A DNA stretch of 64,000 bases from the NCBI RefSeq assembly GCF_902652985.1, contig NC_047023.1, positions 39,246,001 through 39,310,000 on the forward strand, in the 5' to 3' direction. Below, in pieces: positions 17,402 to 53,647 of this stretch; position 1 is the first letter of the stretch; each line of letters starts with the position of its first letter. The notes beneath the pieces were generated by a model. It did no database searches and was not told the origin of the DNA. It worked only from the letters and a program-made list of their open reading frames with translations. Source of the DNA: Pecten maximus. Taxonomy: Eukaryota. A program made the position numbers and the translations under genes.

Positions 17402-20400
17402 TGTCGGATGGTGAGAGATTACTCGAACAACAACATGTTGTCAGCCATGCTGGATTTATTACCTCATTACTACGTCCGGTTTCCGGTTGCATACAAATTA
17501 CAGAATGTGTTTATACTTTACGGAATGGACATAGTATGGAACGCAACTTATAGATATTATGTTATAGACATTACATCTCTCCCTTTTTTAGTATTGAAAT
17601 TAAATTACATTTTAAATTTAAAGTTAAATGTCCATGTGATTACAATTGAACACACTTTGTAGAATCGACTAGAAATTAAAGACTTATATGAATTTATATG
17701 GAGTTATGTTTTATATAGTGTCTCTGAATATTGATGAACAATTATACGAATAACAAATTGCACAGTTAACTCGGTTATAAGTTTCAAATACGAAACAAAA
17801 TGTAAACTGAACTATAAACTATAAGGTCTATTTGACCCGGATTATTATGCCCCAGACACAGTTGAGTCATCATAAACTAATCTATATAATCTAAACAAAG
17901 TCTTTGGCATATTTCAAATTGGGTTTTCTGTCCCTGCCACTTCTTCTGGGTACCGTCATATTGGCTGGACTTCCACTGAGTGGGACATGGACAGATTCAT
18001 TCTGTTGAGAATTCTCTGGAGATGAATTTACACTATCACCTCCTGAATTTGGCCACAAGATGTCCTCAATCTCTTCCTCAGATGGACCTTTTGGCGGTAA
18101 CTCTTGGATTCCTGACCGTACACGTTTGAATCGCGATACGATTCTCGTTACATTCCCTGTCACAGTAACCATTGGTCCCTTCTTTTCCAAAACAACTTTT
18201 GGCTGTGCCTGAAACTTGGGCGCAAGTTTATTTTCTTTGATGTCTTGTTTTATCAATACAGTATCTCCCACGGCTATTTCCCGCGGACGAGCTTGATTTC
18301 GAATATCAGCTTGATATTTCATCTTGTATTTCTCCTGACTGTCTCTTTCCCTGACTTGTTGGTCAGTCGATGACATACACACATTTGACTGTGGTACGGG
18401 TAACTTTGTCTTTGGTTCTCTGTTGAACATAAGCCTATGTGGCGTGTATCCCGTCGTTCTGTGAGGCGTTGCACGGTATTGCCTCAAGAACCTGAACATC
18501 TCCTGTTTCCTGTTTTTATTCTCTAAGTGTGCCGCACGAACAATTTTCATGAGCGGTTTGTTGAAACTCTCCGCTTGTGCGTTAGCAAGCGGCCATCTTG
18601 GTGTAATACGACGGTGATCAAATCCCATGTCCTCAGCGTACTTGCGAAATGCATCCGAATTAAACGGTGAGCCATTGTCACTTTTAATGATTTTTGGACA
18701 ACCAAACATACTCAGTACCTTGTCTAATACAGGTATTGTAGCATTCGCAGACACGGAACGTACTATTTCAACCACTGGATAGCGTGAATACTCATCAACC
18801 ATGACGAATAGATAATCACTACTTGGTAAAGGTCCACAAAAGTCAATACTTATGTTCTCCCAAGGACCTGCGGGTAACTCTGACATACGTAATGGCTCCA
18901 TAACCATTGGCTCCGGTGTCAAAGCTTGACAGGCTATGCAATCTTTCACTGCATCCTCAACTTGACTATCCATATTTGGAAACCAAACTTTTGATCTCAA
19001 AAATGCTTTTGTCTTTGCCATTCCCTGCTGTCCTTCATGTGCGACATTAATAGCACGATTCCTTAGCGTATAAGGTAAAACAATACGATGATCTCGTAAT
19101 AAAATGTTGTCAGAATGTACTGTAAGTTTCATCACGCACATTTCTCAGGGACACAAGTTCCTCCATGTGTAGATTCTCCTCATGCACATGTTTTAAGTCA
19201 TGCCATCTCCCATTTCTTACGAACTCAATCGCCTTCTGTAGTGTGTGACGTTGCTTCTCTGACGTCATCAAGGCGTATGGCATGTGGTAATGACTCTGAA
19301 GTTTACGTAGATTTCAGCGACCTCCTCTTGAGCAGATTTCTGTAATTTCTCGGGTAGTGGATGTCGTGAAATGTAGTCTGCTACATTTTTTCTCACTGGG
19401 TTCATACCGTATGTTGAATTTGTAGGGTTGTAGTCTGAGTCCCCATCTCTCAATCCTCAGACTTTGAAGTTTTGGTTTTTCCCATATCTTCTCCAATGGT
19501 TTGTGATCAGTAACTACTGTAAAGTGGCACAAACCTCTCAGGTAAGTATCGAAATGTTCACAAGCCCATACAACAGCTAGGGCCTCGCGTTCAACTTGAC
19601 TATAACGCGACTCTACGGACGTCAACGAACGACTCGCGTAGGATACAATCTTGTCCTGGACAAGCACAGCACCCAATCCTATAGGGCTAGCATCCACTCT
19701 GACCTCGACTGGCTGCTTAGGATCATAATAAGTCATAACTATGTCACTAGAAAGCTTGTCCTTTAACATCACAAATGTTTTTTCACAGGCATCGTCCCAC
19801 TTCCATGTTACGTCATTATGTGTGAGACGTCGTAGGGGCTCGCAAATTGTGGCATAGTCCTCGAGCTGTAGCTCACCATTACAAGGAAACTCTTTACTTC
19901 CTTGACGTTTTGAGGTCTCCCAAACTCTTGGACGGCCTTGACCTTTTCTGGATCAGGAGAGATACCCTCCTTGCTAAACACAACACCAAAAATGGTTAGT
20001 CTGCCTTTGCGAAATTCACACTTTTTACCGTTCAGTGTCAAACCACTGTCTCGTAGCCTCTCAAGGGTTGCTCTCAATACCCTGTCATGTTCCTCTGTGT
20101 TCTTTCCATAAACAATGATGTCATCAGATATATTCCTGACTCCGTTTACCCCCTGAATGACTTGTCTAATAGTTTCCTGGAAAACTTCGGAGGCTGATGA
20201 TATTCCAAAGTTCAGACGTTTATACCTGTATATACCTAGGTGAGTAGAAAATGTTGTAATGTACCTGGACTCTGTTTCAAGTTCCAGTTGGTGATATCCA
20301 CTCCTGAGGTCAAGTTTACTAAAGACAGTAGCTCCATTTAAATCTAAAATGAGCTCCTCAATTGTAGGCATGATGTGTCTTTCCCTCACAATAGCCTTAT

Positions 20401-20964
20401 TGGCCTCACGCATGTCAATACACAACCGTATCTCGTCTGGATTTCTTTTGGGAGGGGTTACTATAGGCGACACCCATGGTGTAGGTTCACCATCGACCTT
20501 CTCGATGATATCCTCCTTGACTAGCTTGTCTATTTCAACTTTCACTTTATCCCTCAGATGAAAAGGTGTCCTCCGTGTCGTTGTGCTACAGGGGCGACAT
20601 CGGTATTGATGTGTAACTTTACTTTACGGTCTTTTAGTTTGCCTATCCCCTTGAAGAGATTTCTGAAACAAGCTTCATCCTCTATATTCTCCGATGTAGC
20701 CACCAGCTGCTCCTGGACCTGGCATACTTTGAGTATCGATAATCGGCTGGCTGTTGGGTATCCCATTATGGATCCATATGTCCCCTTGACTACATGCAAC
20801 GTTATTGTGTCAAATACTATTTGAGTTTCTATCTTTAAAGTACAAGTTCCTAAAACTTTGAGGGTTTTACTCCCTCCATAAGGTACTAACCTTGTCTTGG
20901 TTTTGTATCTGGACAAAGCAGGCTTACCTAGTTTCTCGTAGTCAGCCTCATCAAGGATGTCGAC
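17402..20964 (-). mobile_element. Second Ty3/Gypsy element, 5'-truncated (gag and protease active site missing), with PPT and 3' LTR
   Basis: RT (LDLRSGYHQ, ISDDIIVYG), RNase H (VDASPIG, EREALA), IN (IDF/SDNG/AES). PPT AAAAAAGGGAGAGA at 17589-17576 is followed by TGTAATG. The outer LTR edge near 17402 is uncertain. Confidence 0.92.
17891..20964 (-). pseudogene. Gypsy pol pseudogene (PR C-terminus, RT, RH, IN) with frameshifts
   Basis: ORFs 20554-20976, 19808-20545, 19314-19772, 19268-19453 and 17891-19141. Confidence 0.92.
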
Positions 20965-23036
20965 AAATTTATACAAAAACTACAAGATACATTTCTCTTC
21001 CAGCATATAAACCAACCAAACAGATGGCGAGGAATGGACAATCCACAATTCTTGACCTTGTTATAACAAAGGATGAAAAATCACTCTCACCTGTAGAATA
21101 CCAGAGTGCACTTGGCAAAAGCGATCATTGTATGCTAGTCTTTAATATATTATCTAATATTAACGTAAGTTTGCAACAAAAAATGAAAACAGGTCATAAA
21201 GAAGCTAACTACACAATGATAAATGATGTATTAGGAAACACAAACTGGAAAGAGAAAATAAAACCGTCAAACACCATTGATGAGAATTGGAATCAATTCA
21301 AGAGGATCTTGAAGGAAGCAGAAGAAAAATATGTCCCAAGGAAAATTATAAAAATTGGGAGAAACAACAAGCACAGTTTTCCAGCGGACCAGGCAACACT
21401 AGATGCCATCAGAAAGAAGCACTCTTTGTCCAGAAAAGCTATAATGAGTAAGAATCCAGAAATACGCATGGAATACAATAACATGCTAAATAAAGTCAAG
21501 AAATTAACGCGTAAAGCAAGAAAAGATTATGAAAATAGCATCGCAAGTAAAGCAAAAACCGATCCTAAAGTAATTTGGAACTACATTAAGTCAAAATCAA
21601 CAACAAAATCTGGCACTGCAGACCTATATCTAGACCCAACAGACATTCAATCGGTCAAAATAACAACAGATAAAGGAAAAGCAAATATACATTGTAAATT
21701 CTTCAGTAGCGTTTTTTGTAAAAAGAACAGGATGGACCTATACCGGAAGTACAACAAATGCAGATAAAAGAAGAGATGTCTAAGCTAACTGTGGAGGAGG
21801 AAGCAGTCTATAAACTACTGAAGAACCTCAAACCGGACAAATCACCAGGATTAGACGATCTCCACCCCATGTATCTAAAACACATTGCACTATCAATATT
21901 GGGACATTGACAGGGGACGTGGTGGCCGAGTGGTTAAGGTGTACCGACACTTTATCACTAGCCCTCCACCTCTGGGTTGCGAGTTCGAAACCTACATGGG
22001 GCAATTGCCAGGTACTGACCGTAGGCCGGTGTTTTTTCTCCGGGTACTCCGGCTTTCCTTCACATTCAAAACCTGGCACGTCCTTAAATGACCTTGGCTG
22101 TTAATAGGACGTTAAACAAAAACAAACAAAACCAAAAATTGACAGATATCTTCAATCAAACCTTATCAACGGGTACACTGCCGGAAGATTGGAAAAGGGC
22201 TCGGGTCAGCGCAATTTTTAAGAAAGGGGACAAATGCCCGGCAGGAAATTATAGACCAGTCAGTCTAACATCTGTGCTATGTAAAGTTTTAGAAACAATA
22301 ATAAGGGAACACATAACATTTTTTATGAGAACAAACAACTATTTTTCGCATAAACAATATGGCTTTTTATCGGGAAGATCGACCTGCCTCCAACTACTAG
22401 GGTTATGGACAAATGGACCAAGGCTCTAGACAATAATAAAATCATTGATTGTATTTACATGGATTACCAAAAAGCGTTCGACACTGTCCCACATAAAAGA
22501 TTAGTCAACAAACTTAAGGCGTATTATTTCTCAGAACAAATCATCTCTTGGATATCAGGATTTCTAACAGACAGAAGTCAAAAAGTTACTGTGAATGGTG
22601 AAGATTCAGAATGGGGTAAAGTAACTTCAGGCATTCCACAGGGAAGCGTCCTAGGGCCAATTATATTTGTAATATTTATAAACGATCTGCCAAACATCGT
22701 TAAATCGGATATGTACCTCTTTGCAGATGATACTAAGATCATTAAAATTATGGAAATCACTGACCACTCCACTGAGCTCCAGGATGACCTAAACAATATG
22801 TGCAACTGGACCGATCCATGGCTTCTCAAAATGTACCCAGACAAATGTAAGCACGTGAGAATAGGCACAGGAATACCAAAGGATCAAGATCACAAGATGT
22901 CACATACAACCTTAAAGGAAACCCACTTCAAACAACAACACCGAAAAAGGAATTGCCGTTATAATAAATTCTGCGAAAAAAAAAGAAAAAAAAAAAAAGA
23001 AGCAAATTCCATGTTTGCCCTCCTAAGAAGAACATT
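20965..23036 (+). mobile_element. CR1-like LINE ORF2 fragment (EN C-terminus plus RT), interrupted by a SINE, truncated at both ends
   Basis: ILDLVIT, LGKSDHCML, PDKSPGLDDLHP, NYRPVSLTS, YMDYQKAFDTVPH, GIPQGSVLGP, LFADDTKI. Frameshifted. Confidence 0.92.
21913..22137 (+). mobile_element. Full-length tRNA-derived SINE (V-domain-like core, CAAA tail) with 7-bp TSD
   Basis: A box GTGGCCGAGTGG, B box GTTCGAAAC, core TTTTCTCCGGGTACTCCGG. TSD ATTGACA at 21906-21912 and 22138-22144. Confidence 0.93.
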
Positions 23037-23183
23037 TAAGCATTATTCTCAATTTATTTTTGGTTTATGAAGTCATAGACAAAAAACGGATGGGTATTCT
23101 TTTTCATAAACGCTTCGCGAACGCCCATCCGTTTTTTTTGTCTATGACTTCATAAACCAAAAATAGATTAAGAATAATGCTTA
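23037..23183. mobile_element. Near-perfect fold-back palindrome (about 63-bp arms); probable terminus of a larger non-autonomous element reaching about 23.9 kb
   Basis: TAAGCATTATTCT..ACGGATGGG pairs with CCCATCCGT..AGAATAATGCTTA. The loop contains CGCTTCGC. It truncates the LINE. Confidence 0.8.
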
Positions 23184-27041: not shown

Positions 27042-27949
27042 CTGCTGTCTGTTAAAGAATGGCGGCCTATCGAGGCTTTACTGTCTGTTAAAGGGTGGCG
27101 GTCTATCGAGGTTTTACTGTATGTTAAAGAGTGGCGGTCTATCGAGGTTTTACTGTCTACTAAAGAGTGGCGGTCTATCGAGGTTTTACTGTCTACTAAA
27201 GAGTGGCGGTCTATAGAGGCTTTACTGTCTGTGAAAGAGTTGTGGTCTATCGAGGGTTTACTGTCTGTTAAAGAGTGTCGGTCTATCGAGGGTTTACTGT
27301 CTGTTAAAGAGTGGCGGTCAATCGAGGTTTTACTGTCTGTTAAAAGATGGTGGTCTATCGAGGTGGTACTGTATGTTAAAGAGTGGCGGTCTATAGAGGC
27401 TTTACTGTCTGTGAAAGAGTTGTGGTCTATCGAGGGTTTACTGTCTGTTAAAGAGTGTCGGTCTATCGAGGGTTTACTGTCTGTTAAAGGGTGGCGGTCA
27501 ATCGAGGTTTTACTGTCTGTTAAAGAGTGGCGGTCTATCGAGGGTTTACTGTCTGTTAAAGAGTGGCGGTCTATAGAGGCTTTACTGTCTACTAAAGAGT
27601 GGTGGTCTATCGAGGGTTTACTGTCTGTTAAAGAGTGGGGGTCTATCGAGGTTTTACTGTCTACTAAAGAGTGGCGGTCTATAGAGGCTTTACTGTCTAC
27701 TAAAGAGTGGTGGTCTATCGAGGGTTTACTGTCTGTTAAAGAGTGGCGGTCTATCGAGGGTTTACTGTCTACTAAAGAGTGGTGGTCTATCGAGGGTTTA
27801 CTGTCTGTTAAAGAGTGGCGGTCTATCGAGGGTTTACTGTCTTTGAAAGAGTTGTGGTCTATCGAGGCTTTCCTGTCTGTTAAAGGGTGGCAGTCTATCG
27901 AAGCTTTACTGTCTTTGAAAGAGTCGCGGTCTATCGAGGCTTTACTGTA
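27042..27949. repeat. Second array of the 36-bp satellite (35/36-bp units, about 25 copies)
   Basis: Same consensus and orientation as 1-2289. Confidence 0.96.
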
Positions 27950-28573
27950 GTTGCTATAGGCTTAATTATTACTGACCTGATCGAGTTAAGTTAACGATTT
28001 TCAATTTCATGAATGAGGAATTTACAATATACTTAATCACAAATATGTGTGCATTTAAGCATGATATATGGCGTAGTTCGTATGAAATGTGAATCGGACT
28101 AGAATTAGGGTAATCACCATTAATTACATATATAATTAACTAGATAATTAATTCAATGTTTACTGGACTGTGGCATCGGAGATATTTTGGTAGTTGTGTG
28201 ATCGCCCACAGCGTTATGTTAAAAGGTTAATTCCGAGGACTTATGTTATATGATGCATTTTATGCAAATGTTAAATGTTAGGCAGATCAAATCTTTCGCG
28301 GCTAAAGGTCGCATTCAAATTGTTCATTTCTACACATGATTTCCCCTCTTTTGTATCGTATTGTGTGAGTTTTGAAGAAAGAATAAAATAATATTTAAAC
28401 CAGTTATCTTCACATGATTCTTAAAACTGACAACATCGTCTTATACCAGTATTTTATGAGATAAAATGTTCAATAAATATATAACAATTCGTCCTTCTTA
28501 GACTCGTCAGCGACGTCAGGGCCAAAATAGTGGACATCCAGATAAAAGAAGCTATGACAATATAATTTTTGAA

Positions 28574-29074: not shown

Positions 29075-29249
29075 TTTGAATGTTCAGTGGATCGACAAAC
29101 GACATTCAGATTTTGAATGTTCCGTGTCTCAACATACGACATTCAGATTTTGAATGTACCGCGGCTCATCATACGACATTCAGATTTTGAATGTTCCGCG
29201 GCTCGACATACGACATTCAGATTTTGAATGTTCAGCAGCTCGACATACA
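29075..29249. repeat. 37-bp tandem repeat with an internal palindrome (ACATTCA..TGAATGT), about 4.5 copies
   Basis: GACATTCAGATTTTGAATGT at 29101, 29138, 29175 and 29212. Confidence 0.88.
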
Positions 29250-30961
29250 ACTGATGGTGAAGAGTATGTGACTGATGGTGAAGAGTATGTGACTGATGGT
29301 GAAGAGTATGTGACTGATGGTGAAGAGTATGTGACTGATGGTGAAGAGTATGTGACTGATGGTGAAGAGTGTGTGACTGATGGTGACGAGTATGTGACTG
29401 ATGGTGACGAGTATATGACTGTTGGTGACGATTATGTGACTGATGGTGAGGAGTATGTGACTGATGGTGACGAGTATGTGACTGATGGTGACGACTATGT
29501 GACTGATGGTGAAGTGAATGTGACTGATGGTGAAGAGTATATATTTACCATTGTATGGCACTGCCACTATACAACCCTTCCAATTCAGTTGCGAGTTCAC
29601 CAGCTTATGAACTGCCAACTGAAATTTGAATTTGAAAATTTCAAACAAAAAATCGCACGGCAAATAAAAAAACGCAGATGGTAAATATAAGCATTGAACG
29701 GCTTTCAGTTGGCATTCATAGTCAATATGAATGCCAACTGGACAGAGGTAAATTCAACATGAGAAAGCCGTTCAATGCTTAAGTGACTGATGGTGAAGAG
29801 TATGTGACTGATAATGACGGGTATGTGACTGATGGTGACGAGTATGTGACTAATAGTGAAGAGTATGTGACTGATGGCGAAGAGTATGTGACTAATGGTG
29901 ACGAGTATGTGACTGATGGTGACGAGTATGTGACTGATGGTGACGAGTATGTGACTAATGGTGACGAGTATGTGACTGATGGTGACGAGTATTTGACTGA
30001 TGGTGAAGAGTATGTGACTGATAGTGAAGAGTATATGAATGATGGTGACGAGTATGTGACTGATGGTGAAGAGTATGTGACTGATGGTGACGAGTATGTG
30101 ACTGATGGTGACGAGTATGTGACTAATAGTGAAGAGTATGTGAATGATAGTGAAGAGTATGTGACTGATGGTGACGAGTATGTGACTGATGTTGACGAGT
30201 ATGTGACTAATAGTGAAGAGTATGTGACTGATGGTGACGAGTATGTGACTGATGGTGACGAGTATGTGACTAATAGTGAAGAGTATGTGAATGATAGTGA
30301 AGAGTATGTGACTGATGGTGACGAGTATGTGACTGATGGTGACGAGTATGTGACTAATAGTGAAGAGTATGTAACTAATAGTGAAGAGTATGTGACTGAT
30401 GGTGACGAGTATGTGACTAATAGTGAAGAGTATGTGACTGATGGTGAGGAGTATGTGACTAATAGTGAAGAGTATGTGACTAATAGTGAAGAGTATGTGA
30501 CTGATGGTGACGAGTATGTGACTAATAGTGAAGAGTATGTGACTGATGGTGAGGAGTATGTGACTAATAGTGAAGAGTATGTGACTGATGGTGACGAGTA
30601 TGTGACTGATGGTGACGAGTATGTGACTAATAGTGAAGAGTATGTGACTAATAGTGAAGAGTATGTGAATGAAAGTGAAGAGTATGTGACTGATTGTGAC
30701 GAGTATGTGACTGATGGTGACGAGTATGTGACTAATAGTGAAGAGTATGTGAATGATAGTGACGAGTATGTGAGTGATGGTGAAGAGTATGTGACTAATA
30801 GTGAAGAGTATATGACTGATGATGACGAGTATGTGACTGATGGTGACGAGTATGTGACTGATGGTGACGAGTATGTGACTAATAGTGACGAGTATGTGAC
30901 TGATGGTGAAGAGTATGTGACTAATAGTGACGAGTATGTGACTAATAGTGAAGAGTATGTG
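29250..30961. repeat. 21-bp minisatellite ACTGATGGTGA(A/C)GAGTATGTG (about 70 copies), split by a 242-bp insertion
   Basis: Direct periodicity; source of the TDGEEYV and TYSSPSV pseudo-ORFs. Confidence 0.96.
29541..29782. mobile_element. 242-bp double-hairpin insertion without TSD
   Basis: Removing it restores GAGTAT|GTGACT exactly. IR-A is ATATTTACCAT/ATGGTAAATAT and IR-B is TAAGCATTGAACGGCTTTC/GAAAGCCGTTCAATGCTTA. Confidence 0.85.
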
Positions 30962-31177
30962 CTGTCCTTGATTTTAACGAAGGCATTCCTTAAGATTTGA
31001 AAGTTCAAAGTTAATCAAAAGCTCTTGAAATTCTCCGAAATCAACTTTTCGTAAATTCCATTCATATACAATATCACACTTTAACTGATACATTTACTTA
31101 AGCTAGTAAGATGTTTCGATAAACTCATAGTTGAGCGAGTTCCCGAGCGATTAATTACTGTATATATTATTAATTAA

Positions 31178-36919: not shown

Positions 36920-38340
36920 CCTTTGTATGATTTGTGTTATCTCCCTTTGTATGATTTGCGTTATTTCCCTTTGTATGATTAGTGTTATTTCCCTTTTGTA
37001 TGATTTGTGTTATTTCCCTTTGTATGATTTGTGTTATTTCCCTTTGTATGATTTGTGTTATCTCCCTTTGTATGATTTGTGTTATTTCCCTTTGTATGAT
37101 TTGTGTTATCTCCCTTTGTATGATTTGTGTTATTTCCCTTTGTATGATTTGTGTTATCTCCCTTTGTATGATTTGTGTTATTTCCCTTTGTATGATTTGT
37201 GTTTTCTCCCTTTGTATGATTTGTGTTATTTCCCTTTGTAGGATTTGTGTTATTTCCCTTTGTATGATTTGTGTTATCTCCCTTTGTATGATTTGTGTTA
37301 TTTCCCTTTGTATGATTTGTGTTATTTCCCTTTGTATGATTTGTGTTATTTCCCTTTGTATGATTTATGTTATCTCCCTTTGTATGATTTGTGTGTTATT
37401 TCTCTTTGTATGATTTGTGTTATTTCCCTTTGTATGATTTGTGTTATTTCCCTTTGTATGATTTGTGTTATCTCCCTTTGTATGATTTGTGTTATCTCCC
37501 TTTGTATGATTTGTGTTATTTCCCTTTGTATGATTTGTGTTATTTCCCTTTGTATGATTTGTGTTATTTCCCTTTGTATGATTTGTGTTATTTCCCTTTG
37601 TATGATTTGTGTTATTTCCCTTTGTATGATTTGTGTTATTTCCCTTTGTATGATTTGTGTTATCTCCCTTTGTATGATTTGTGTTATTTCCCTTTGTATG
37701 ATTTGTGTTATTTCCCTTTGTATGATTTGTGTTATTTCCCTTTGTATGATTTGTGTTATTTCCCTTTGTATGATTTGTGTTATCTCCCTTTGTATGATTT
37801 GTGTGTTATTTCCCTTTGTATGATTTGTGTTATTTCCCTTTGTATGATTTGTGTTATTTCCCTTTGTATGATTTGTGTTATTTCCCTTTGTATGATTTGT
37901 GTTATCTCCCTTTGTATGATTTGTGTTATTTCCCTTTGTATGATTTGTGTTATCTCCCTTTGTATGATTTGTGTTATTTCCCTTTGTATGATTTGTGTTA
38001 TTTCCCTTTGTATGATTTGTGTTATTTCCCTTTGTATGATTTGTGTTATCTCCCTTTGTATGATTTGTGTTATCTCCCTTTGTATGATTTGTGTTATCTC
38101 CCTTTGTATGATTTATGTTATTTCCCTTTGTATGATTTGTGTTATCTCCCTTTGTATGATTTGTGTTATCTCCCTTTGTATGATTTGTGTTATCTCCCTT
38201 TGTATGATTTGTGTTATCTCCCTTTGTATGATTTGTGTTATCTCCCTTTGTAGGATTTGTGTTATTTCCCTTTGTAGGATTTGTGTTATTTCCCTTTGTA
38301 GGATTTGTGTTATTTCCCTTTGTAGGATTTGTGTTATTTT
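36920..38340. repeat. 24-bp minisatellite CCCTTTGTATGATTTGTGTTAT(T/C)T, about 59 copies
   Basis: Direct periodicity, highly homogeneous. Confidence 0.98.
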
Positions 38341-40271
38341 TTAGAAATCGTTTTGATGTTACATTTTCAGCTCAATTAACTTTTCAGTGTGGTTTTCATT
38401 TCTACCTTTTGGGTTTGTTTGTTTTGTTTTGTTGTTTTTTTTTTTGGGGGGGGGGGGGGGGGGGTATGAAATTAATTGAGTGATTAATTCTTTCATTCAC
38501 TCACATCCATTTATTCATTCACCTTTTATACACATGCATATCAAATATGATTTAACAAATTTAACAAGTGTCGCGATTCGTACATTAGTCCGACAAAATC
38601 GATACGAACATGTAAGGAAATATAACTTCCGTTACAAACCTAGGCTATTCAATCTAAAATGTAAAGATTTTATGAAAAGGTGGAATTTTGGTCGATAAAC
38701 TTTAGTAATTATGTATCTTTTCATGCATTGTGTAAATATCTTTTTAAAAACATAATAACTTTAACATAAATAATTTTATGTCCTGGTCGCTATTAGATTT
38801 CCGTTTAACACATGCCTTTCCATATATAAAACCATATTGAAAAAAAAAACTTCCAGTATTGAGTAGCGTTGAACTCGTGTATGGTACAATATATCAAATC
38901 ACCAACTGAAACACCCTTTTAACTTGGTGTGTAAAACTGACAGATTCCTGTGAAATACACACAGTATTCTTTGACATTTCCGTTACTGCCTCCACGACGA
39001 TGAAATGCCACTTTACTACTTGTTCAGCCGTCTATGGTTTATATATCCACAAAATGGGTTTGGCTCCGATAACACAAGCACCTGCTGTTATCCAGTTATG
39101 GGGTTTAACGCCCTCGAAACAGCGACAACCAGAGCAGATAGGAAAGGAAGGACAATATGTGGAGTGTTAAAAAGAGACAGCGGATCATTTAGTCTCTTTA
39201 AAATCACTAAATAGCGGAAAACTATTATTTATCATCACACTGTTTTAAATCGCATTTTTAGGTACAAAGCAAATACCGGCATAGCTTCTTTTGATATCTC
39301 TTACTACAAGGCACTGGAGAAACCATTTCGACCTCAGGGGAGTACCACCGTTACATTTAGTTGTATCTTACGACATTTGACCAGACATACATGTACCAGG
39401 CATGTTCACCCCTGAAAGGACTCATGTAGTGTTTTAGGGTTTTTCATCGCAAGGTCACTTCCAGTTTTAGATAGGGGTCAATGTTTAAAAGGAGTAGTTT
39501 TGGTAATAAACTTTAATTGGATATCGAATTTGTTAAAAAGAATGACATTGACCAACATTCAAGGAAGCATGGCTAAAATATCTGAAAATCTTTAAATGAC
39601 CGTACTGCATGTATTAACCAAAAATCCAAGGGCGGTGAGAATTGCTATTGACAGCAACAACAAAAAAGAGGAAATAGTCAACTTTCGGTTTTGTGGGATC
39701 AAATATCAAAAGTGCTATTTCCAGTAACAAACCTTAGAACTGTTCTAAATTTCTGGATGGTCTAGACTCTTAATGTTTATAAGATACACACCATTAACAC
39801 TTGTCTTTATGTGCTTTGTTTTCTCTCTAGTGTCTTCTTGACACCGGTCCTCATATACTCCTGGCTGTTGCGATAATCAAGAGGCCCTGGTTGATGATAT
39901 TCGACATGTGGCCTGCTGTAATAACGACTACAAACGTATAAATGACTTCAACCAACTCTCAAGATCACAGGGGTCAAAAGTATTAAAAACTAGGCAGTGG
40001 TTTTATATTTTATTTAACATGTCGTCATCCAATATGAAGATCATACTTCAGACCTGTTTATTTATCAGTCATTAGAACTGCATCCAGTTTGATTTAGTAT
40101 TACGTATACGTTAAATTATGTACATTTTATTTACTTATACCCAAAACCTAATTATATTTTAACAAAACACACAGTTGTTTGTCCAAATTAAACGCAATAT
40201 ATTAATATAAGGTTAATAAAATCAGTGCAATTAACATAATGCATAGAGAATCATGTTGTTCTTCGGTGAAC

Positions 40272-42889: not shown

Positions 42890-45800
42890 ATGGCAACAGA
42901 ACCTGATGAAGTAACAGTCATAGGTGGGTAGTAACTGTATATATATGGTAGAGTGTAAAATTCTTATCATCTTGACTCAGTGTGGTGTAAAATAACCAAA
43001 TAATCATTATAAATCCAATCAGTTTCACTTCTTATGGTAAATACAAGTGAATGTAGTATTTAATGTGTCTAATAGGGTAAAAGTAAAGATAGCTCTCTGT
43101 TATTCTTGAATCTTGTAGTCTTGTGTCTGCCAGTCTTATAGTACTGGTAATGTATAGATGTTTCATAGTAAATTGATGTGGTCCAAATTAAATATACAAT
43201 GTTGTAAGTATTTTCACCCTACAGTGTATTTGGGCAGTACCGATTGGATTATCTTGTAAGCTTTTTTGTCATGTTTCCCTTGTGTAGTCATAGTATAAAT
43301 TGAATAAATCGTGCAAATTGTGTTCTACAAAACCACTTTAGCATCTTATATTCTTGATGCCATCAGCAGTAGAATAAAATAAGTATTTCAGTAGTTACAA
43401 GTTCCTGAGATGTTTTGACTCCTATACATACTGTAGTTGACTGGAAATGTATTATGATTAGTTTGAAAGTACATGTATTATATAGTAGTGGAAATCTTTA
43501 TTGACACATTAAAACACCTCATGTCACAAGGTGATTGTATACATCACTGGTATACATGTTGAAATTCATTTTCCTAATATGAATGATATTGCTATTTAAA
43601 GCGCTTAATAAAAAAAAAAAATGCATTAATAATATGTAAAGATGTACATATATGTGTATTGGAAAGATGTTGTAATGAAGAAATATTTCAAAAATGTAAA
43701 CTTTATTTTGACAAGATAATTTACTTTTTTTTGACAAGATACTGTAGTTTAGATGAGATTTGATAGACTGTAATAGAGGTTAGAAAGAACAAATCATATG
43801 TACCGGTATACAAAATGTCATATCTAACGTTTTGTATAAAATTAATATCTTAACATTTTATACAAACTACTGATATTTTTGTCTGCCCTTCTTATTTGTT
43901 GATACAGGAGTTTATCCAGATTTATTTGAATGAAAGTTTCAAAACAGTAGCATTTCTTGTAACAGTAACTGTATATTTCCAATAACTTCAAAAATGCAAA
44001 AGTAATCAACTTAAGAAGTCAGACATTATATTGTGTATATATGACCCCTTGAATTTCTGTCAGTTCAAGACAAGTAGTGGGAATATATAACCAGCGATGT
44101 ACTCTAGTGATACAAGTTAGATAAAACTATATACACCTGTTATTATAGATAACTGTCTTGTACTTGTATAGCTACCTGGTAACATAAAATGTGTGTGTAG
44201 TCCAGTTACAGTGTTTCAGCTTTGTTAGCTTTATTCCTGCACATCTTCATTAATTCTAGAGATGGAAGGACTAAATTGATCCATATGCAATAGTAAAAAA
44301 CATGCTGTGTAAATCAAAATTGTCAATCGGTGAAGACACAAATGAGTACAGTATGAACAAACTTTTTTATTGAGATTAATACGAGAAAAAGAAGAAAATC
44401 CTGGAAATTCTTCTCAAATTAACACTTATAATTTCAGATAAACCAAATTTCATTATACGGTATTCACTGTACTTCTTATAAAATATTTACCTTGCTTAAA
44501 AAATGTAGGGAACTTTTGCCATGGGCTAGTCTATACAGCTATTCAGACACCCTGAATAGAGACATTTCTTTTATGATGCACATTGTGTTGATTTGATAAT
44601 GTATGCTTTAATTTTGTATTTGTGGTATCACTAGTACTGATGTTACAGTATACGTATCTACCGGTAATGTCTCTGAGAAGACAATGTCAGTTGTAATGCT
44701 TGACTGCTGCAGACTATGCAAAATATGAAAAAAACAAGCGTTTCGTATATGCCACACATTATTTATTTTACAAAAATTGCTAAGCAAGTTATATTTACTA
44801 ATGTTAATCACTCATGTTGGTCCAGATGAAAGTGTGCGAGTGGTCTTATAATTATAATGGGAAGAAAACAATACCTGAAGATAATATTAATCTATATGGT
44901 CTGGCATTGGTGATGACCATTTGACAAACCCTGGTCACCTATGTGTTATCATTGTATTACATGGAGTGTGACCACACAGAGTGTTTTTATATTAATATGT
45001 GCAGAGGTATCAAATATAGGTATTCTTTGTGATGATGGACACTTTTATAGGAAGAAATGAATTACCAGAGCTCCACTTGAATGACTAAGTGTTATTCCAG
45101 TGGTGACTTAGTAAGATATTACGACTATAAAGTTATTTACTGTGCAATAAAGATCTAAGGAACCTGTAATAATCCTATAAACTGATGACCATATAATGTA
45201 CAGGTATAAAAAGTCTTAACTCAACAGATCAAGTGAAGGCCAGGATTGCGCGCAGATATCGGTGCAATATTACTGACACTGCAGAATCGTTTAACATTCT
45301 AAAGGAAGTTTCAGGGTTTCAGGAAGTCCTTACAGCAGAGATGAAAATGTTCAGCCGATTGGCTGATTTCAGCCTTTTTGAGTAATGTAATGTAAACTTG
45401 TAATTTTTCCCATTGAAAAGATTGAGTAATCTAATTTTCAGCCTTTTTGCCCTTAGTCCATTTTCATCTCTGCTAGTCTTTCACCTGTGTAGCCATCATG
45501 TTTCCTGATAAACCATACATAATACATATGTTGTATGTGCTTATTTTTTCTTATTTGCCAGGACAATTAACTTGGAATTTCCAACTTTCTTGAGGGTTGA
45601 GTTAACATTATATTTACCGGTATTTGAGTTCCAGCTCAAATTGTTCTTTTCTGCTTCATAATATATGTAATCAAAAATGGATAAAATCAGCCACTTTAGC
45701 AGTCTTAATCAATTATCAATTAATTTTTAAACCAATATGATGCTTAATTTGATGTATGACCTTTTTTTTTTTTTTTTTTAGTTTTGAAATCTTTTTTATT

Positions 45801-48800
45801 CATCCTTTTACATGTAGTATACATACAGGTATATTATATTACATGGTATAATAATACAGACATATCATTACAGCAGTAAGATGTACAATACGTATTAAGT
45901 GATGAATATATTGACCAGGTTAGGTGGCATAGTGGTGATGCTCTCCCCTCTCACAAAGACCACCTGGCCATTTGCCATCCAGACACAGGCCAACAAGCAT
46001 AATATGGTTAATGTTGATGTCAGGTCATTCTGGTCAAATATATATAAAACAAATTATTAGATCAAATTTTTTTAATATAACTATTTGCATCACTGAAAAC
46101 TTGAGATGAGCAAGTGGAAAATAAACTGCATTGATCAGTATATATCTGTATGATAGTTTGACCTGTGACCTTTGGTCTCATTCTGATATCTGAAGAATTT
46201 AGTATATACAGGGTAATATTTTGTGCATACTTAATGTTATTTTGATTTTTCAATAATTCATGCATGAACTGTTGCTGCACCCTATGCAGATTGTTAAATA
46301 TTGTTTTGTATCACCTCTAAAGAATTCTCGTTTTGATTAGGCATGCATCATTGTGTTTATGTAGATCTTATATATACCCAGTCATGCATGAGTCATTGTG
46401 ACCACAGGTATAGCTATAAAGGTCAAAGTTCATGTCATGTAGGATTGTTAAATTGACATATACATGGTATGTATTTTTATTCTACCACTACAGCGATGTC
46501 TCAGGCCGGCCTTTAATATGTTGCCATTGCCCTAGTGATGTACATGTCCTTATCGTCATCAATCCACAGATTTGGTTAAGATATTTTATATCAGAGTTCT
46601 ACATTCACTCATTAATAGTGATAGGGTGCTGACATTTTACACCAGAGTTCTCCATTCACTTATTGATAGAATGTTGACATTTTCCATGAAAATTCTTTTT
46701 TGATCAAATTAACATCTTTGATCTGCAGTTAAATTAGGAATTTTCATTTTTTTTTTCATTTGGTTTTAAATTTCTTTCCATGAGCCACTAGGGCATACAT
46801 CCAATAATTACAATAAAATGACCTCGTATGTTTTGTGTATGCATATAGTCACAGATTGTATACAAGTACTTGCTGGCCTAGCTTACCCTAGGGCTCAAGA
46901 TTTATTTGATATTCAGGTCTGAACATTTTATAGACCAGAATTAAATGTAAAAAGATTGGTGACTATATAATCAGATTGTAAAATTTTCAATATTCAATGC
47001 ATACAGCCGGGTATATGCTTATATTTATATAGGAAATTGTAACTCCAAACAATTATGGACAGTCATATAACTAATTTTGATTGTGATTGTATAGACCTGA
47101 AAAATATGATTTAAGATTACCTTATATAGAATACCTTATCATCAGAGCCTTGAGAGAAATGCATAAATTATGTGTAAAATCTTACTGGTATGTAAAAGGT
47201 ATGTAGGGTTATACTATATGTACCTCATGATCAGCGTGTATGTGTATAATATGAAACATTTTGTATTTCCTGCAGCAGTGCACAAGCTGATGTGGTAACA
47301 TGTACAGTCAACTGTATATACAGGAACTTCCTGTATTTGAGTGCAAAATTTTTTAATAATTTTATACATCTACATACTCCCTAATGCAAGCATGTAATGT
47401 CTGATATTATCATCTTAAAGAGGGCAGTGATTACAATAGTATCAAAAGTGAAAATGAAAACATATTTTTCAATAACAGCGGAAATTAACATATAGAATCA
47501 TTAAATAGTGTAAAAACTGAGAGGTTTGCTATTTCATAATAATTTAATTTTGTATGAAACACGCATTTTCATTGGCTGAAATAATTTTGTTATACCTCCA
47601 TAACAAAATTTTTGACGTTGCGAAATGTAACGTCATTTTTGATTGGCTGATGACGTGGCTAATAATTTATCACAGAAAAGAGTTCGCCAAAGAAAGTGAA
47701 ATATCTTGGTGTGTATAAGATGAAATTAAATTATAAGAATTAACATTAATTATTTTTTCTGTTATACAGTCATAACAAAAAAAACTGGAGTGTACTCTCT
47801 TCATAAACCGCGAAGCGGTTTATTTAGAGTACATGTAGGCGGTAAACCAGTAACTAACAAACACTGACTATAGTCAGTGAGATGAAACCTAGTGATAGGT
47901 GGAGTCATGTAGGCGGTAAACCAGTAACTAACAGACACTGACTATAGTCAGTGAGACGAAACCTAGCGATAGGTGGAGTCATGTAGGCGGTAAACCAGTA
48001 ACTAACAAACACTGACTATAGTCAGTGAGACGAAACCTAGTGATAGGTGGAGTCATGTAGGTGGTAAACCAGTAACTAACAAACACTGACTATAGTCGGT
48101 GTGATGAAACCTAGCGATAGGTGGAGTCATGTAGGCGGTAAACCAGTAACTAACAAACACTGACTATAGTCGGTGTGATGAAACCTAGTGATAGGTGGAG
48201 TCATGTAGGCGGTAAACCAGTAACTAACAAACACTGACTATAGTCAGTGAGATGAAACCTAGTGATAGGTGGAGTCATGTAGGCGGTAAACCAGTAACTT
48301 ACTAATGCTGACAAAACACTGACTATAGTCAGTGAGATGAAACCTAGCGATAGGTGGAGTCATGTAGGCGGTAAACCAGTAACTTACTAATGCTGACAAA
48401 ACACTGACTATAGCCAGTGAGACGAAACCTAGTGATAGGTGGAGTCATGTAGGCGGTAAACCAGTAACTAACAGACACTGACTATAGTCAGTGAGACGAA
48501 ACCTAGTGATAGGTGGAGTCATGTAGGCGGTAAACCAGTAACTAACAAACACTGACTATAGTCAGTGAGATGAAATCTAGCGAAAGGTGGAGTCATGTAG
48601 GCGGTAAAACAAGTAACTAACTAAAACTGACTACAATCATCTATAGAGACGAAAAGTAGTAATGGGCAAAGTCAATAGTCAGGTAGGTGGTAAACCAGAA
48701 ACTAACGAAGAAACACAGGATATTGTAGGATGCAATCATTCAAATATAATAGATATTGTCAATTATATATATGTATGCTAATTGTATTTGTTCAGAATTA

Positions 48801-51800
48801 TAATTATGTTCAAACACCAGTAGTATATATTCAGACATAATGATTTCTTTTTATGATGAATTGACACTTATTTCCTTTTGCATGTATTTCAGTTGTCAGT
48901 GCTAAAGGGCTACAGGGCAGAAAAGCAGGTTTGTGGAAAAAAATTATCTACATTTTCTATAGAACACATCATTGTATGTCAGTAATATAAATCATACAAT
49001 TGATTTAAGTTAGTAAATTTGTATCAGTTTAGAGCTGTAGCACTAGTATGATCCGAGATATAGCCATCATGGTACCAGTAACATTGATCTACTTTCTTTT
49101 CCAATTGTCTATCATGGACAAGCATGTATCATTTACAGAATAAAATATAACATGCTAAATAATTATCTGTTAATTTTCTCTGTTGACCACAGGACGACAC
49201 AAATACTCGGTGATATTTGGTGTCGGAAGCAAGAAATACCGTACAGCAGTCGTTAAGCATCCAGAACCAGAATGGAACGAGGAATCTGTTATGTAAGTCT
49301 ACCAAGCATTGCTGACAGTTGATGTAACAAGGAGAACCGAATCCTTAATTAAGTTAAACTTGCAGGTTTGGGGTGATAGACTGAGTATAATTAGGTATAA
49401 ACCTGTGGGGTCCCAATACAATGTTATTGTAAAAGTCATTAAAGCCTCCTCCAGTATCTATTTATCTATTTTTCGCACACCTCTCATCAGATGATTGGCT
49501 GTTTGAATTACCCTTATTTCAAGGTCTGTCATTCATCCATCTATAAAATTCCTTATCATTAATTAGAAGTCCCAAAAGGTTCTCTTTCAATTTTCACATG
49601 TAGGTTCCTTCAAGTCCTAGTTGTGTATAATCCATTCCAAACTTGATCATAAAACATATCTTTATGTAAGAGACAGGCCATTTTGAATTTTGACAGTTAG
49701 CATTATTTCTCAGAAAGTATTGTAAGGATCATATACAGGTTCCCCGTTGGTCTGCACTTCTTTTCGAAGTTTCTCCCTTTAAAAATTCATCTTTGTCAAA
49801 ACATAGTGCTGATGAGCATGTGTTACCGCTAACACTTCTGACCGAAGTCGGATGTTTGGAGACACTGAAGTACATGATTTGTTCGTCGTAGTTTTGATGT
49901 ACAATACATGTATCAAATTCCAGAACTTTGGGTAGTACTATTGATTCTTTTGTACTACATTTGTATTACAAACTAGATCCAAGACTTGAGTTTAGAACAT
50001 AGATATTTAGCTACAAATTACAATTGAAGTTTATTGTGAAATCTTCTTTGCTTTTCTCTAAAAGAATTTCAAATAAAAAAAATTCGAACAGTATACTGAG
50101 TATTTAAAATAAAGGAATTGAATAGAATGAATACTTAAATGTTTACATCTTGTATTTCAGCCATGTGAACAATATCCTAGACCAAGTATTCTTTATTGTG
50201 ACGGAGAAAGAAGATATACTTGGTCAGGTGAACATCCCAGTAACCTCCCTTCAGGCATCACCAGGACGCAACATGAAGTCGACACTTCAACCTCACAAAA
50301 AGTGTTCAAATCCAACAGGAGAGTTAGTGTACCAATGCTATGTCTCCAAGCGTCGTCCCGCGGGAATGAACTATGAGTCCAAATCTCCGACTCTATCCCA
50401 TAAGTACAGGAAGGAAAGACGTGGCTCCACATTATCTACTATAAACAAGAAGTTCTCCCGCTCCATTCATGATCTTCTCAGCTTTGGCAAATCTAGTAAT
50501 AATAATGAGGAGGACAATACCCCGAAACTTAAGTCCAAACATGGGCCAAAGTTCATGAGCATCAGCTCTGGGCTGGACAGCTCGGGTAAACTGCCTGTGA
50601 TATTGAGTGTGAGTCCCAATGTCGGACTGACCAGTGGAGGTACACGAATCACCATTGTTGGGAAGAACTTGGGGTTCAGTAAGAGTGATATTGTAGATCT
50701 GACTATTTGTGAATGTGACTGTGTGGATTATATTGAATATGAGTCTTCTTCTAAGATTCACTGTAAAACAAGGTCCACTCTCCCTGGCAAGGGTGACATC
50801 ATCCTCGAAACAGAGTCAGGTGGCATTGGTACTCTAAGAAATGCATTTGCTTTTGTTGATGAACTTCCGGAAAATGGTGTGAACCCATTTGATAGCCCCA
50901 ACCCATTCGATGATGGTGATGTGGATTCTGGGGAACAAGCTAGTTTTACTATTGGGGATTCTCCAGAGATGCAAACAAAGGCAATATCTGTAAGTTGTTT
51001 GTTTGGTTGATCTGAATTTAATCGTTAATATTTGAATAATTTTATGTGAATGTTGGTCAATTTTATAACTAAAGACATTTTTGACTTTTAAAGTATCAAG
51101 TACTCCTGTAGATGGAAAAAATATATATCAAGTAATGATCAGTGGCCTTATTGGCAGATAGGAATTGCTCTAAGTACTCGTCATTTGTGTACTGATGCAA
51201 AATTACTTACACATGTACATTAATTAAAGCAACACCGTGTAATGAGACACCTTGTCTCCTGTTGTGCCCATCATGCATTGAATTTCTTAATTTTCTGGAG
51301 TTCTCCCTTGGGGATATATATTTTACTAGAATAGCCTAAAAGACAACTTGACAAGTACTAGTTGGATATCCGTGGATGTGTTTTTACCAAGTAATCATGC
51401 ATAGCTTTGAATAATTCCTTTATATAGATATTTTTTTATGGTAATATCTTTACCTGCAGGTGCCAGTGCCATCACCAAAAGGAGGAAGTGTGTCCAGCAT
51501 GTCTCCCCCCTCTAAAAAACATTTTGTGAAACACTTGAGGAGGGCAAGTGAGGGACATGTTCTACAGCAGTTAAAAGGGGGACCAGGTAAATTAATAGTA
51601 TTCGTTCATAAGTCCCTGTTTTGTTTCCATATCAGTAATGGTAACTCTAGAAAGTTTCTCTCAAAATCCCTACAATAATCAAATGTACATTGTATGTTTT
51701 TATCCTACCTCAGTTTAATTTTTGGCCAATTCTTTAAAAATTGCAGGAGTTATGGCCCTTTATTTCCAATTTACATGGTATTGCAACAGACAAATGCCCC

Positions 51801-53647
51801 CTGCCCTCATCACAATGGGTCACCATGATGAGTATGAGGGATGTACAATATAATGATTTATAAGGGCAAAGGCACAAAATGATGACATCTTTGTGTTCTT
51901 GTTTCTAAATTTCTAAAAAAGTAAATCTACCGTTCTTATTTACTGAACAGTTAGATTGAGGATCCAAGTAGGCATAGATCAAGCACTATCCTTTTATTTA
52001 TTAATTACCTCAAATGGATTAAGTTAATGAATGGAGGTATGTTATCTTGACTCTATACTCTACGGTTGGTAAATTTCACGGTGCTTATGTATCGTAGTTG
52101 TCTCGGTCAGAACTATTTGGCAAGAACTAAATCCTGCAAAAAACTTTTTTTGTAAACATTCTCCAGTAAACACTTTTATAACTTTGTATATATTAATATT
52201 CGCTAGGTATTTATGTTTGCCCTGTATTTTAAGACTAAAAAAGTTGAAATCAAATCTCCACGAATATTACCAACTACAATGTATACAGATACATGTATGT
52301 CTATTTCTATATACATGTACATCTATATGCAAAGATAAAGGACCATAATATCTCACAAAGTTTGCGGGTTTTTCGGGTCAAGGTCACAGTTACTGGGACC
52401 AGTATTGCTTTAGCAAAGCCCAGGGATATTATGTGAATATAGGAATTTCTCCAGAGCTATTTTAGTGTAGCTGATATTTAATGGAAAATCAGTATATATC
52501 ACAATACCTGTGATAACAACCAAATTTTTTTGTATAGAAATAGATGATATAAAAATAACTTTTATAATATGAACTTGTGTGAAGTAGAATCTATATCATC
52601 AGACTTGGATGATGTTTTGTTTACTGTATGTGAAGTAGAATCTATATCATCAGACTTGGATGATGTTTTGTTTACTGTATGTGAAGTAGAATCTATATCA
52701 TCAGACTTGGATGATGTTTTGTTTACTGTATGTGAAGTAGAATCTGTATCATCAGACTTGGATGATGTTTTGTTTGGTCCCGTCGACTTCGACTTATCCA
52801 AATTTTACTGTATGTGAAATAGAATCTATATCAACAGACTTGGATGATGTTTTGTTTGGTCCCGTCGACTTCGACTTATCCAAATTTACTGTATGTGAAG
52901 TAGAATCTGTATCATCAGACTTGGATGATGTTTTGTTTACTGTATGTGAAGTAGAATCTATATCATCAGACTTGGATGATGTTTTGTTTACTGTATGTGA
53001 AGTAGAATCTATATCATCAGACTTGGATGATGTTTTGTTTACTGTATGTGAAGTAGAATCTATATCATCAGACTTGGATGATGTTTTGTTTACTGTATGT
53101 GAAGTAGAATCTATATCATCAGACTTGGATGATGTTTTGTTTACTGTATGTGAAGTAGAATCTATATCATCAGACTTGGATGATGTTTTGTTTCAGTGGC
53201 AGCCACTCCGCCGGTGTCACCTACACCAAACAAGATGGAGAAGCTACAGCAACAGGTCCTGGAACTCAAGAAGGAGAATCTAGGTATATACTTAACACTA
53301 TATATAGTTGGGACATTTGTATGGAAAATCAAATTTTGGTTAAAGATCATCTTCAATATTGCAAGTGTTGCATTCACATAGTATTACGATCTCTGCAAAA
53401 TAACCAAATTTCACAAATTATCAGTTCTGCAAAAATACTGACTTTATTAAATTATTGTATCAAAACAAATTCACCGGGTACACTAATGAAGTGAAGAAAT
53501 AAAATAAAAATAAAAATGTTTTTTTTTTCAGCTTTGAAACAGGATAACAAAGACATGAAAGCTTACATTGATAAGTTGGTAGCAAAGGTCATACAGCATT
53601 GCCCAGACGCTCTCGAATCAGGCACAATGCAGAACAGATGGAGATAA
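42890..53647 (+). CDS. Class-I Rab11-family-interacting-protein-like protein: C2, Sec5/EXOC2-like IPT/TIG domain, 2 NPF motifs, FIP-RBD; 442 aa, 7 coding exons
   Basis: Exons 42890-42923, 48893-48928, 49193-49292, 50161-50989, 51460-51586, 53197-53283 and 53532-53647, all GT-AG with matching phases (1,1,2,0,1,1). C2: VTVIVVSAKGL..KYRTAVV..PEWNEE..ILGQVNIPV..GEL. RBD: DMKAYIDKLVAKVIQHCPDAL. Confidence 0.92.
45334..45474. mobile_element. 141-bp MITE with 16-bp TIRs
   Basis: AGCAGAGATGAAAATG pairs with CATTTTCATCTCTGCT. TSD not clear. Confidence 0.7.
47530..47832. mobile_element. Truncated fold-back element with a GCGAAGC hairpin centre, related in layout to 23037-23183
   Basis: TGTACTCT..ATAAACCGCGAAGCGGTTTAT..AGAGTACA. 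The right arm is replaced by the 74-bp array. Confidence 0.6.
47832..48705. repeat. 74-bp intronic tandem repeat (about 11 copies) containing the palindrome CACTGACTATAGTCAGTG
   Basis: CATGTAGGCGGTAAACC at 47832, 47906, 47980 and onward. Confidence 0.96.
52577..53196. repeat. 51-bp intronic tandem repeat (about 11 copies) whose last unit supplies the splice acceptor of coding exon 6
   Basis: Units end GATGTTTTGTTTAC; the final unit ends GATGTTTTGTTTCAG|exon. Two units carry an insert of about 30 bp. Confidence 0.96.

Follow-up and report, generated by a model that had tools for sequence, protein, structure and literature searches.

A scallop gene that joins a C2 domain, a Sec5-type IPT domain and a FIP-like C-terminus

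What is made by a gene that reads like a Rab11 family-interacting protein (FIP) at both ends and like the exocyst subunit Sec5 in the middle? The question is raised by LOC117333846, a gene of the scallop Pecten maximus located at positions 42890-53647, plus strand, of a 64,000-nucleotide stretch (G000:C9:39246001-39310000; the whole stretch is hereafter called the window, and coordinates given without a prefix refer to it). The gene is already annotated but uncharacterized, and some of its relatives are misnamed. An initial annotation of the window, made from the DNA letters alone, had proposed a Rab11-FIP-like adaptor with an embedded IPT domain of the Sec5/EXOC2 type. Here we report that LOC117333846 is a single-copy, transcribed gene whose product is a cytosolic adaptor of 442 amino acids, that its IPT domain is Sec5-type in origin and that its C-terminus, as judged from profile comparisons, is probably a divergent FIP Rab11-binding domain (RBD). 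By analogy with known FIPs, the protein would be a Rab11 effector with an additional contact through the IPT domain, a reading to which we give a probability of about 0.6.

Gene structure, transcripts and modules

LOC117333846 comprises seven coding exons separated by introns that all begin with GT and end with AG. The coding sequence of 1329 nt (442 codons plus stop) runs from the ATG at 42890 to the TAA at 53645-53647. The in-frame exon translations tile, in order, the RefSeq "uncharacterized protein" P0001 (442 aa), with one codon split at each phase-1 or phase-2 junction, and the window gene matches this entry at 100%; the intact 442-aa spliced reading frame originally described is thus correct. 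Pecten exons were searched singly, while whole-protein analyses were run on the identical entry P0001. When exon 4 was searched against the Pecten genome, it matched itself alone. The features of the gene are as follows.

42890..42923, + strand: coding exon 1, with the start codon and the C2 domain's first strand, residues 1-11 and 1 nt (ATG at 42890, GT donor at 42924, match to P0001)
48893..48928, + strand: coding exon 2, a 36-nt microexon, C2 loop, residues 13-23, phase 1 in and out (translation match to P0001, AG/GT flanks)
49193..49292, + strand: coding exon 3, central part of C2, residues 25-56 (Pfam C2 fragment from the exon alone, match to P0001)
50161..50989, + strand: coding exon 4, 829 nt, residues 58-333, with the C2 end, the KKFSRSI..SF motif, the IPT domain and the NPF motifs (match to P0001)
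50450-50485, + strand: conserved KKFSRSI..SF motif within exon 4
50594..50848, + strand: Sec5/EXOC2-type IPT/TIG domain, residues 202-286, intronless (Pfam TIG, E 7.5e-11)
50882..50914, + strand: pair of NPF motifs with acidic residues behind them, N298-D308, NPFDSPNPFDD (direct sequence reading)
51460..51586, + strand: coding exon 5, residues 334-375, disordered linker (match to P0001)
51514-51555, + strand: basic RRAS motif in exon 5 (invariant in bivalves)
53197..53283, + strand: coding exon 6, residues 377-404, where the coiled coil begins (match to P0001)
53532..53647, + strand: coding exon 7, residues 406-442 and TAA, FIP-like Rab11-binding motif (Pfam RBD-FIP below cut-off)
53564-53572, + strand: Y416-I417-D418 (YID) in exon 7

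Contigs from four public runs (four studies) were aligned to the interval 48800-52570, which ended before a 51-nt tandem array in intron 5. The splice joints 48925/8 to 49190/3 and 49292 to 50161 were present in contigs of X1, X3 and X8 (three studies), and the joint 50989 to 51460 in contigs of X1 and X3. One X1 contig of 2611 nt spans exons 2-5 and covers exon 4 from end to end. Contigs of X1, X3, X7 and X8 continued before 48891 into a loose end with letters of exon 1, and those of X1 and X3 continued behind 51586 into one with exon 6's first 30 letters. With the aligned interval stopping at 52570, the exon 5-6 joint is visible in Pecten contigs as a loose end only, and the exon 6-7 joint is based on P0001 and on two Logan contigs of a second scallop, 1651 and 1417 nt long, which encode a complete 442-aa orthologue, P0003. 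Because of the transcript joints and these full-length contigs, the IPT exon can be placed in a single mRNA together with the exons for C2 and RBD, and the linkage of exon 4, for which the initial annotation had looked to RNA sequencing, is confirmed.

These data bear on the trivial explanation that the combination is an artefact of gene prediction, two neighbours, an IPT fragment and a gene of C2 or FIP type, having been misfused, or a pseudogene. The gene does lie in repeat-rich DNA, with long tandem arrays in introns 1 and 5 and retroelement open reading frames (ORFs) upstream. Against this stand the X1 contig holding exons 2-5 with letters of exons 1 and 6 at the ends of the transcript contigs, the intact reading frame, the full-length orthologous mRNAs of related species and bivalve orthologues that are 46-90% identical to the Pecten protein. 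Since the IPT exon shares one transcript with the exons on either side of it, we rejected a fused gene, and find an artefact of any of these kinds scarcely credible.

Introns 1 and 5 each carry a tandem array. The end of intron 5 (52578-53193) consists of about 12 copies of a 51-nt repeat, with an 82-nt variant at 52722-52938, and ends no more than 3 nt from exon 6, whose polypyrimidine tract and AG acceptor sit in the last, altered copy. Intron 1 contains a 74-nt tandem array at 47827-48384 (7.4 copies, 93%), followed by 85- and 148-nt variants onward to 48633; some 260 nt separate the end of the array from the 36-nt microexon downstream.

Pfam recognized a C2 domain at the N-terminus of P0001, where class-I FIPs carry theirs (residues 8-93, 34.1 bits with the cut-off at 22), and a TIG domain at residues 202-286 (41.5 bits against 20.9). 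AlphaFold2, supplied with a 35-sequence alignment, predicted three confident modules with disordered linkers between them: a C2 beta-sandwich (residues 5-121; per-residue confidence, pLDDT, about 83-96), an IPT sandwich (residues 203-289, pLDDT about 86-95) and a long helix (residues 387-427). In a Foldseek search with this model, C2 domains ranked above IPT chains. The order of modules first read from the letters, an N-terminal C2 domain, one Sec5/EXOC2-type IPT domain, two NPF motifs and a coiled coil with a FIP-like Rab11-binding motif, is supported.

Three short motifs lie in the linkers. The stretch KKFSRSI..D..SF after the C2 domain is invariant in bivalves, as is a basic stretch before the coiled coil, KKHF.KH.RRASEG, which has the look of an RRxS kinase site and whose residues R360, R361, A362 and S363 are unchanged in 12 bivalve sequences. 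The third, NPFDSPNPFDD (residues 298-308), occurs in four scallop sequences, is reduced to a single NPF in Mya and is missing from oysters and mussels. Motifs of this kind, in which acidic residues follow NPF, are what the EH domains of EHD proteins bind, as in FIP2. By analogy, the LOC117333846 protein may bind EHD proteins; the motifs on which the initial annotation had based such a link are there, but they are an addition made in scallops and not a feature of the family.

The C-terminus and its relation to class-I FIPs

The coiled coil and YID motif described at the C-terminal end coincide with the predicted helix 387-427 and with residues 416-418. Scanning the Pecten genome with the Pfam RBD-FIP profile (PF09457) gave eight places: those on C1 and C10 exceed the cut-off, one on C8 falls just below it and the window gene scores 16.7 bits. 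All eight read Y-[ILV]-D..[LI]...[VI]....P..L. Conversely, a hidden Markov model (HMM) of the family C-terminus, run against 1712 ORFs, ranked the three canonical Pecten RBD exons first. Profile-profile alignment (hhalign) of the family C-terminus with these three canonical RBDs returned a probability of 95.6% and a score of 38.2. In 31 controls, the reversed alignment scored 6.8 and 30 column shuffles scored at most 12.0, with a probability of no more than 1.3%. RBD-FIP is the third commonest Pfam match in the family (13 of 19 members at E<=1) and exceeds the cut-off, at 23.9 bits, in the orthologue of the freshwater mussel Sinanodonta. Residues Y416, P429 and L432 do not vary among 19 sequences ranging from scallop to Pigoraptor. 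Together, these comparisons suggest that the C-terminus, which is homologous at the profile level to the canonical RBDs, is a divergent FIP RBD. Besides the window gene, the genome scan brought up an RBD-FIP-like exon at G000:C8:38856136-38856255 on the minus strand (22.6 bits, the C8 place just mentioned) and two near-identical RBD-FIP-like exons 29 kb apart on C14 (28441196-28441270 and 28470096-28470170, about 18-19 bits).

A separate class-I-type FIP gene of Pecten, with an RBD exon scoring 37.6 bits, lies on C10. The family C2 HMM located two of its C2 exons (24247158-24247266 and 24251738-24251869); a pattern search over up to 40 kb of 66 kb of upstream sequence did not reveal its first C2 exons. 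The intron 3' of exon 3 in LOC117333846 occupies the same position and phase in the C10 gene, namely phase 2, five codons and 2 nt past a PEW motif. The intron 5' of exon 3 also has a counterpart there, in phase 1 at a Gly codon before the next strand, and matches within a 2-residue indel. Since the canonical class-I FIP is on a separate chromosome, LOC117333846 is not its orthologue; the family is related to class-I FIPs as a paralogue, and is distinct from EXOC2 too. In the ESM Atlas, P0001 falls in a cluster of its own (labelled "hypothetical protein", score 0.96; 53 members, mostly Mollusca) in which C2 is found in 100%, TIG in 98% and RBD-FIP in 13% of members; the next clusters are arthropod Rab11FIP1/5 proteins, at 0.75-0.76, which we take as a lead only.

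The likeness to class-I FIPs (RAB11FIP1/RCP, FIP2 and FIP5/Rip11, and Drosophila Rip11) extends to the general plan, with a C2 domain at the extreme N-terminus, a long disordered middle, a coiled coil and a YID-type motif in the last 50 or so residues. The scallop proteins share NPF motifs with FIP2 as well. Unlike class-I FIPs, LOC117333846 has a divergent RBD and carries a Sec5-type IPT domain, of which its relatives have up to three, between C2 and RBD. We know of no characterized FIP with such a domain, and our search of the literature on FIPs with IPT or TIG domains found no paper describing LOC117333846 or its family, in agreement with what had been said at the outset.

A Sec5-type IPT domain and its Ral-contact positions

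A phmmer search with the Pecten IPT domain against all PDB chains placed Sec5's Ral-binding domain first (1UAD_C and 1HK6_A, E 6.5e-16, about 40% identity, end to end), and the match sharpened to 3.4e-18 when the family profile was used. Plexin-A1, -A4 and -A2 and MET gave partial alignments only, the best single plexin domain reaching 23 bits against 61 for Sec5. In the Foldseek search, 1UAD_C was the first IPT chain listed, behind the C2 hits, with a template-modelling (TM) score of 0.82 and a root-mean-square deviation of 2.3 A. An HMM of the bivalve IPT gave a median best-domain score of 60 bits for 118 EXOC2 proteins, gathered by a word search with Lottia EXOC2, versus 27 bits for 133 other IPT proteins, the closest found among 1.84 billion proteins. 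EXOC2 was not among the best 150 of an exhaustive HMMER search with the 97-aa IPT domain, a set made up mostly of giant multi-IPT proteins whose repeat scores are summed; those scanned were Kelch-TIG proteins.

A tree of 108 IPT domains (IQ-TREE), 49 of them other IPTs and the labelled outgroups among these being Kelch-TIG proteins, placed the family and EXOC2 together on one side of a 100/96 branch and the 49 other IPTs on the other. EXOC2 was monophyletic (100/97), as were the metazoan family IPTs (98/93) and, within these, the bivalve IPTs (100/98); the two Pigoraptor IPTs were basal in the clade of Sec5 type and fell outside that of the metazoan family IPTs. Within the Pecten genome, Pinctada EXOC2 found the EXOC2 gene on C11 (17 exon matches) and one further match only, the IPT domain of LOC117333846. 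Thus, these results confirmed the Sec5-type origin of the domain. The central domain resembles EXOC2/Sec5 as first described and groups with EXOC2 against the nearest other IPTs; its contrast with plexin and MET comes from the PDB search, in which their matches were partial.

Despite this common subtype, LOC117333846 does not encode an exocyst subunit, because it lacks the Sec5 helical domain (PF15469), which Pfam scans found neither in P0001 nor in any family member scanned. Its IPT domain is internal and intronless, whereas that of EXOC2 is N-terminal and, in the true Pecten gene (G000:C11:13912878-13930535, minus strand, 17 or more exon matches), divided between two or more exons (query residues 6-42 and 38-97). 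With the plexin and MET domains it shares the Pfam TIG family (PF01833) and an Ig-like fold; unlike these extracellular domains, it belongs to a protein with the cytosolic domains C2 and RBD, and with no Pfam match or predicted helix suggesting a membrane span.

The IPT domain of Sec5 is its Ral-binding domain (1UAD title; bioRxiv 10.1101/2025.08.28.672893). Thr11 of Sec5 hydrogen-bonds Tyr36 of RalA, and the substitution T11A strongly lowers affinity (bioRxiv 10.1101/2025.08.28.672893, citing Fukai 2003). Three positions were compared in an alignment of 28 EXOC2 IPTs, 21 non-bivalve family IPTs and 10 bivalve IPTs. They included Arg27, which is invariant in EXOC2 and is reported to contact Ral.

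Sec5 T11: T in 27/28 EXOC2; T or S in 20/21 non-bivalve family IPTs; L, T, V, I, H or S in bivalves; L205 in Pecten
Sec5 G12: G in 28/28 EXOC2; G in 20/21 non-bivalve family IPTs; S in 8/10 bivalves; S206 in Pecten
Sec5 R27: R in 28/28 EXOC2; R or K in 20/21 non-bivalve family IPTs; E in 7/10, V in 2/10 and I in 1/10 bivalves; V223 in Pecten

Since T11, G12 and R27 are kept outside bivalves, Ral was probably the ancestral partner, and canonical Ral binding by the ancestral family IPT is plausible. In bivalves the contact positions are replaced, and for that reason the domain would have a different partner or none; canonical Ral binding by the scallop protein appears unlikely. The suggestion that LOC117333846 engages a second GTPase or the exocyst therefore stands as regards the Sec5 type of its IPT domain, and is doubtful as regards Ral binding, given L205, S206 and V223 and the lack of the Sec5 helical domain.

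An ancient family and its possible role

The alignments define a family plan, into which the Pecten protein fits: a C2 domain comes first, Sec5-type IPT domains (one to three) follow, and a Y-x-x-x-L..P..L helix stands at the C-terminus. In a word search, the single-IPT form was confined to bivalves (Pecten, Ylistrum, Mizuhopecten, Pinctada, Tegillarca, Crassostrea, Magallana, Saccostrea, Mytilus and Mya, to which Sinanodonta is added). An exhaustive search brought relatives with two or three IPT domains, namely P0040, proteins of Paralvinella palmiformis (three IPT domains) and Owenia fusiformis, several C2 proteins with two IPT domains and a protein of Pigoraptor vietnamica. P0040 (957 aa; C2, three IPT domains and an RBD-like end) is intronless in two NCBI assemblies. 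It is encoded by one uninterrupted ORF at L010:2001-4874, on a 20.7-kb contig (GCA_029979725.1), and again in two further sequences (L011 and L012), where the scallop gene has seven exons. The protein of Pigoraptor, a filasterean, has a C2 domain, two IPT domains and a clear Y-V-D-R-L..P..L C-terminus, and its IPTs branch outside those of the metazoan family members, where a non-animal would be expected to lie. Gastropod or cephalopod members did not appear, though the EXOC2 proteins of these groups are in the same database, an absence that is suggestive only. To judge from this distribution across bivalves, annelids (Paralvinella, Owenia) and a filasterean, the family is ancient in Holozoa, and the adaptor is not lineage-restricted as the initial annotation had supposed.

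Several family members bear names taken from the exocyst. P0028 of Mya arenaria is entered as "EXOC2-like protein", and P0045 (Paralvinella) and P0191 (Owenia) as "Exocyst complex component 2"; these are misnomers, the proteins being without PF15469. Where it was retrieved, bona fide EXOC2 is a separate protein (P0234 in Mya, P0238 in Paralvinella).

We postulate that the LOC117333846 product acts as a Rab11 effector. By analogy with class-I FIPs, its C-terminal helix would dimerize and bind Rab11-GTP through the YID/P..L patch, while the C2 domain would dock the complex on acidic phospholipids. The IPT domain would supply a third contact, ancestrally probably with Ral-GTP and in bivalves with a different partner, if any. 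Scallops, and they alone, would further recruit EHD-type EH-domain proteins through the two NPF-acidic motifs, in the manner of FIP2. A number of results weigh against this proposal. The RBD-FIP match in P0001 (residues 392-433) scores 18.3 bits and that of exon 7 alone 19.3 bits, both below the Pfam cut-off of 23.3. In oysters and Mytilus, no RBD-FIP match was found at E<=0.1; searches of the PDB returned no FIP RBD chain with the family profile at E<=10 and no match with the last exon alone. The nearest solved C2 domains, by PDB profile search and Foldseek, are generic ones (Munc13, NEDD4, E-Syt). Likeness to the C2 domain of the C10 FIP is weak (35% over 23 residues), and BLASTP gave no alignment between the second half of the C2 domain and the canonical FIP C2 exon. 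The replacement of the Ral-contact residues in Pecten tells against the IPT contact in its original form, and the Pigoraptor sequence comes from a culture transcriptome in which contamination is possible.

Some of these points would suit a C2-IPT scaffold that does not bind Rab11, its C-terminal helix being a generic dimerizing coiled coil, its YID..P..L residues not, or no longer, a Rab11 site, and the protein acting through IPT and C2 in another membrane or exocyst-related pathway. Generic coiled-coil families score about as well as RBD-FIP in several of the orthologues where the latter is unseen at E<=0.1, and annelid members have YME, YLE or YMD in place of YID. What such a scaffold fails to account for is the specificity of the profile match to the canonical Pecten RBDs (38.2 against 12.0 or less in the 31 controls), with which the reciprocal HMM ranking agrees, together with the invariance of Y, P and L at matching positions from filasterean to scallop and the placement of the motif at the extreme C-terminus behind a coiled coil, exactly as in FIPs. 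We consider it rather unlikely. Quite improbable, in our opinion, is the proposal with which the locus was first presented, a mollusc-restricted invention whose IPT domain binds Ral-GTP or the exocyst and thereby couples Rab11 and Ral in scallops. The Sec5 type of the domain, with the Ral-binding function that this type has in Sec5 itself, speaks for it. On distribution it is partly refuted, since annelids and Pigoraptor also carry the family, and it has to contend with a Leu at the equivalent of the affinity-determining Thr11, a Ser for G12, a Val (Glu in most bivalves) for the invariant R27 and the lack of the helical domain by which Sec5 would join the exocyst.

A wider proposal, which we advance tentatively and hold to be possible rather than probable, extends the Rab11-effector reading to the whole family. 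Its members would be ancient holozoan adaptors that detect the coincidence of Rab11 and Ral, FIP paralogues whose IPT domain or domains bind Ral-GTP directly and connect Rab11 recycling carriers with Ral signalling independently of the exocyst. The family would have been lost, or have diverged past recognition, in vertebrates, insects and nematodes, which would be why it was never described. Bivalves would have cut the array to one IPT domain and rewired it off Ral, and scallops would have added the NPF-EHD connection.

The remainder of the window is rich in mobile and repetitive DNA. Upstream of the gene are long ORFs that, from inspection of their translations by eye, resemble retroelements with integrase-like, reverse-transcriptase-like and long terminal repeat-type pol products (2268-3235, minus; 6278-7192, minus; 17891-20976, minus; 20892-23070, plus). 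Satellite-like arrays at 391-2001, 12376-13519, 27231-27950, 29154-31008 and 36982-38344 show long repetitive ORFs on both strands and swings in GC skew.

Among the routes that bring recycling vesicles to the plasma membrane, two are known best, those of the Rab11-FIPs and of the Ral-exocyst axis. To our knowledge, the two meet only indirectly in model organisms. The presence of FIP-like ends and a Sec5 Ral-binding module on one chain suggests that a direct Rab11-Ral link may have been lost from the standard models, and the spread of the family over a filasterean, annelids and bivalves would date it to before animals. Database entries that name family members "EXOC2" or "EXOC2-like" need correcting. 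Finally, the family offers a natural experiment, in which IPT domains that keep the Ral-contact residues, in annelids and Pigoraptor, can be set against those of bivalves, which do without them.

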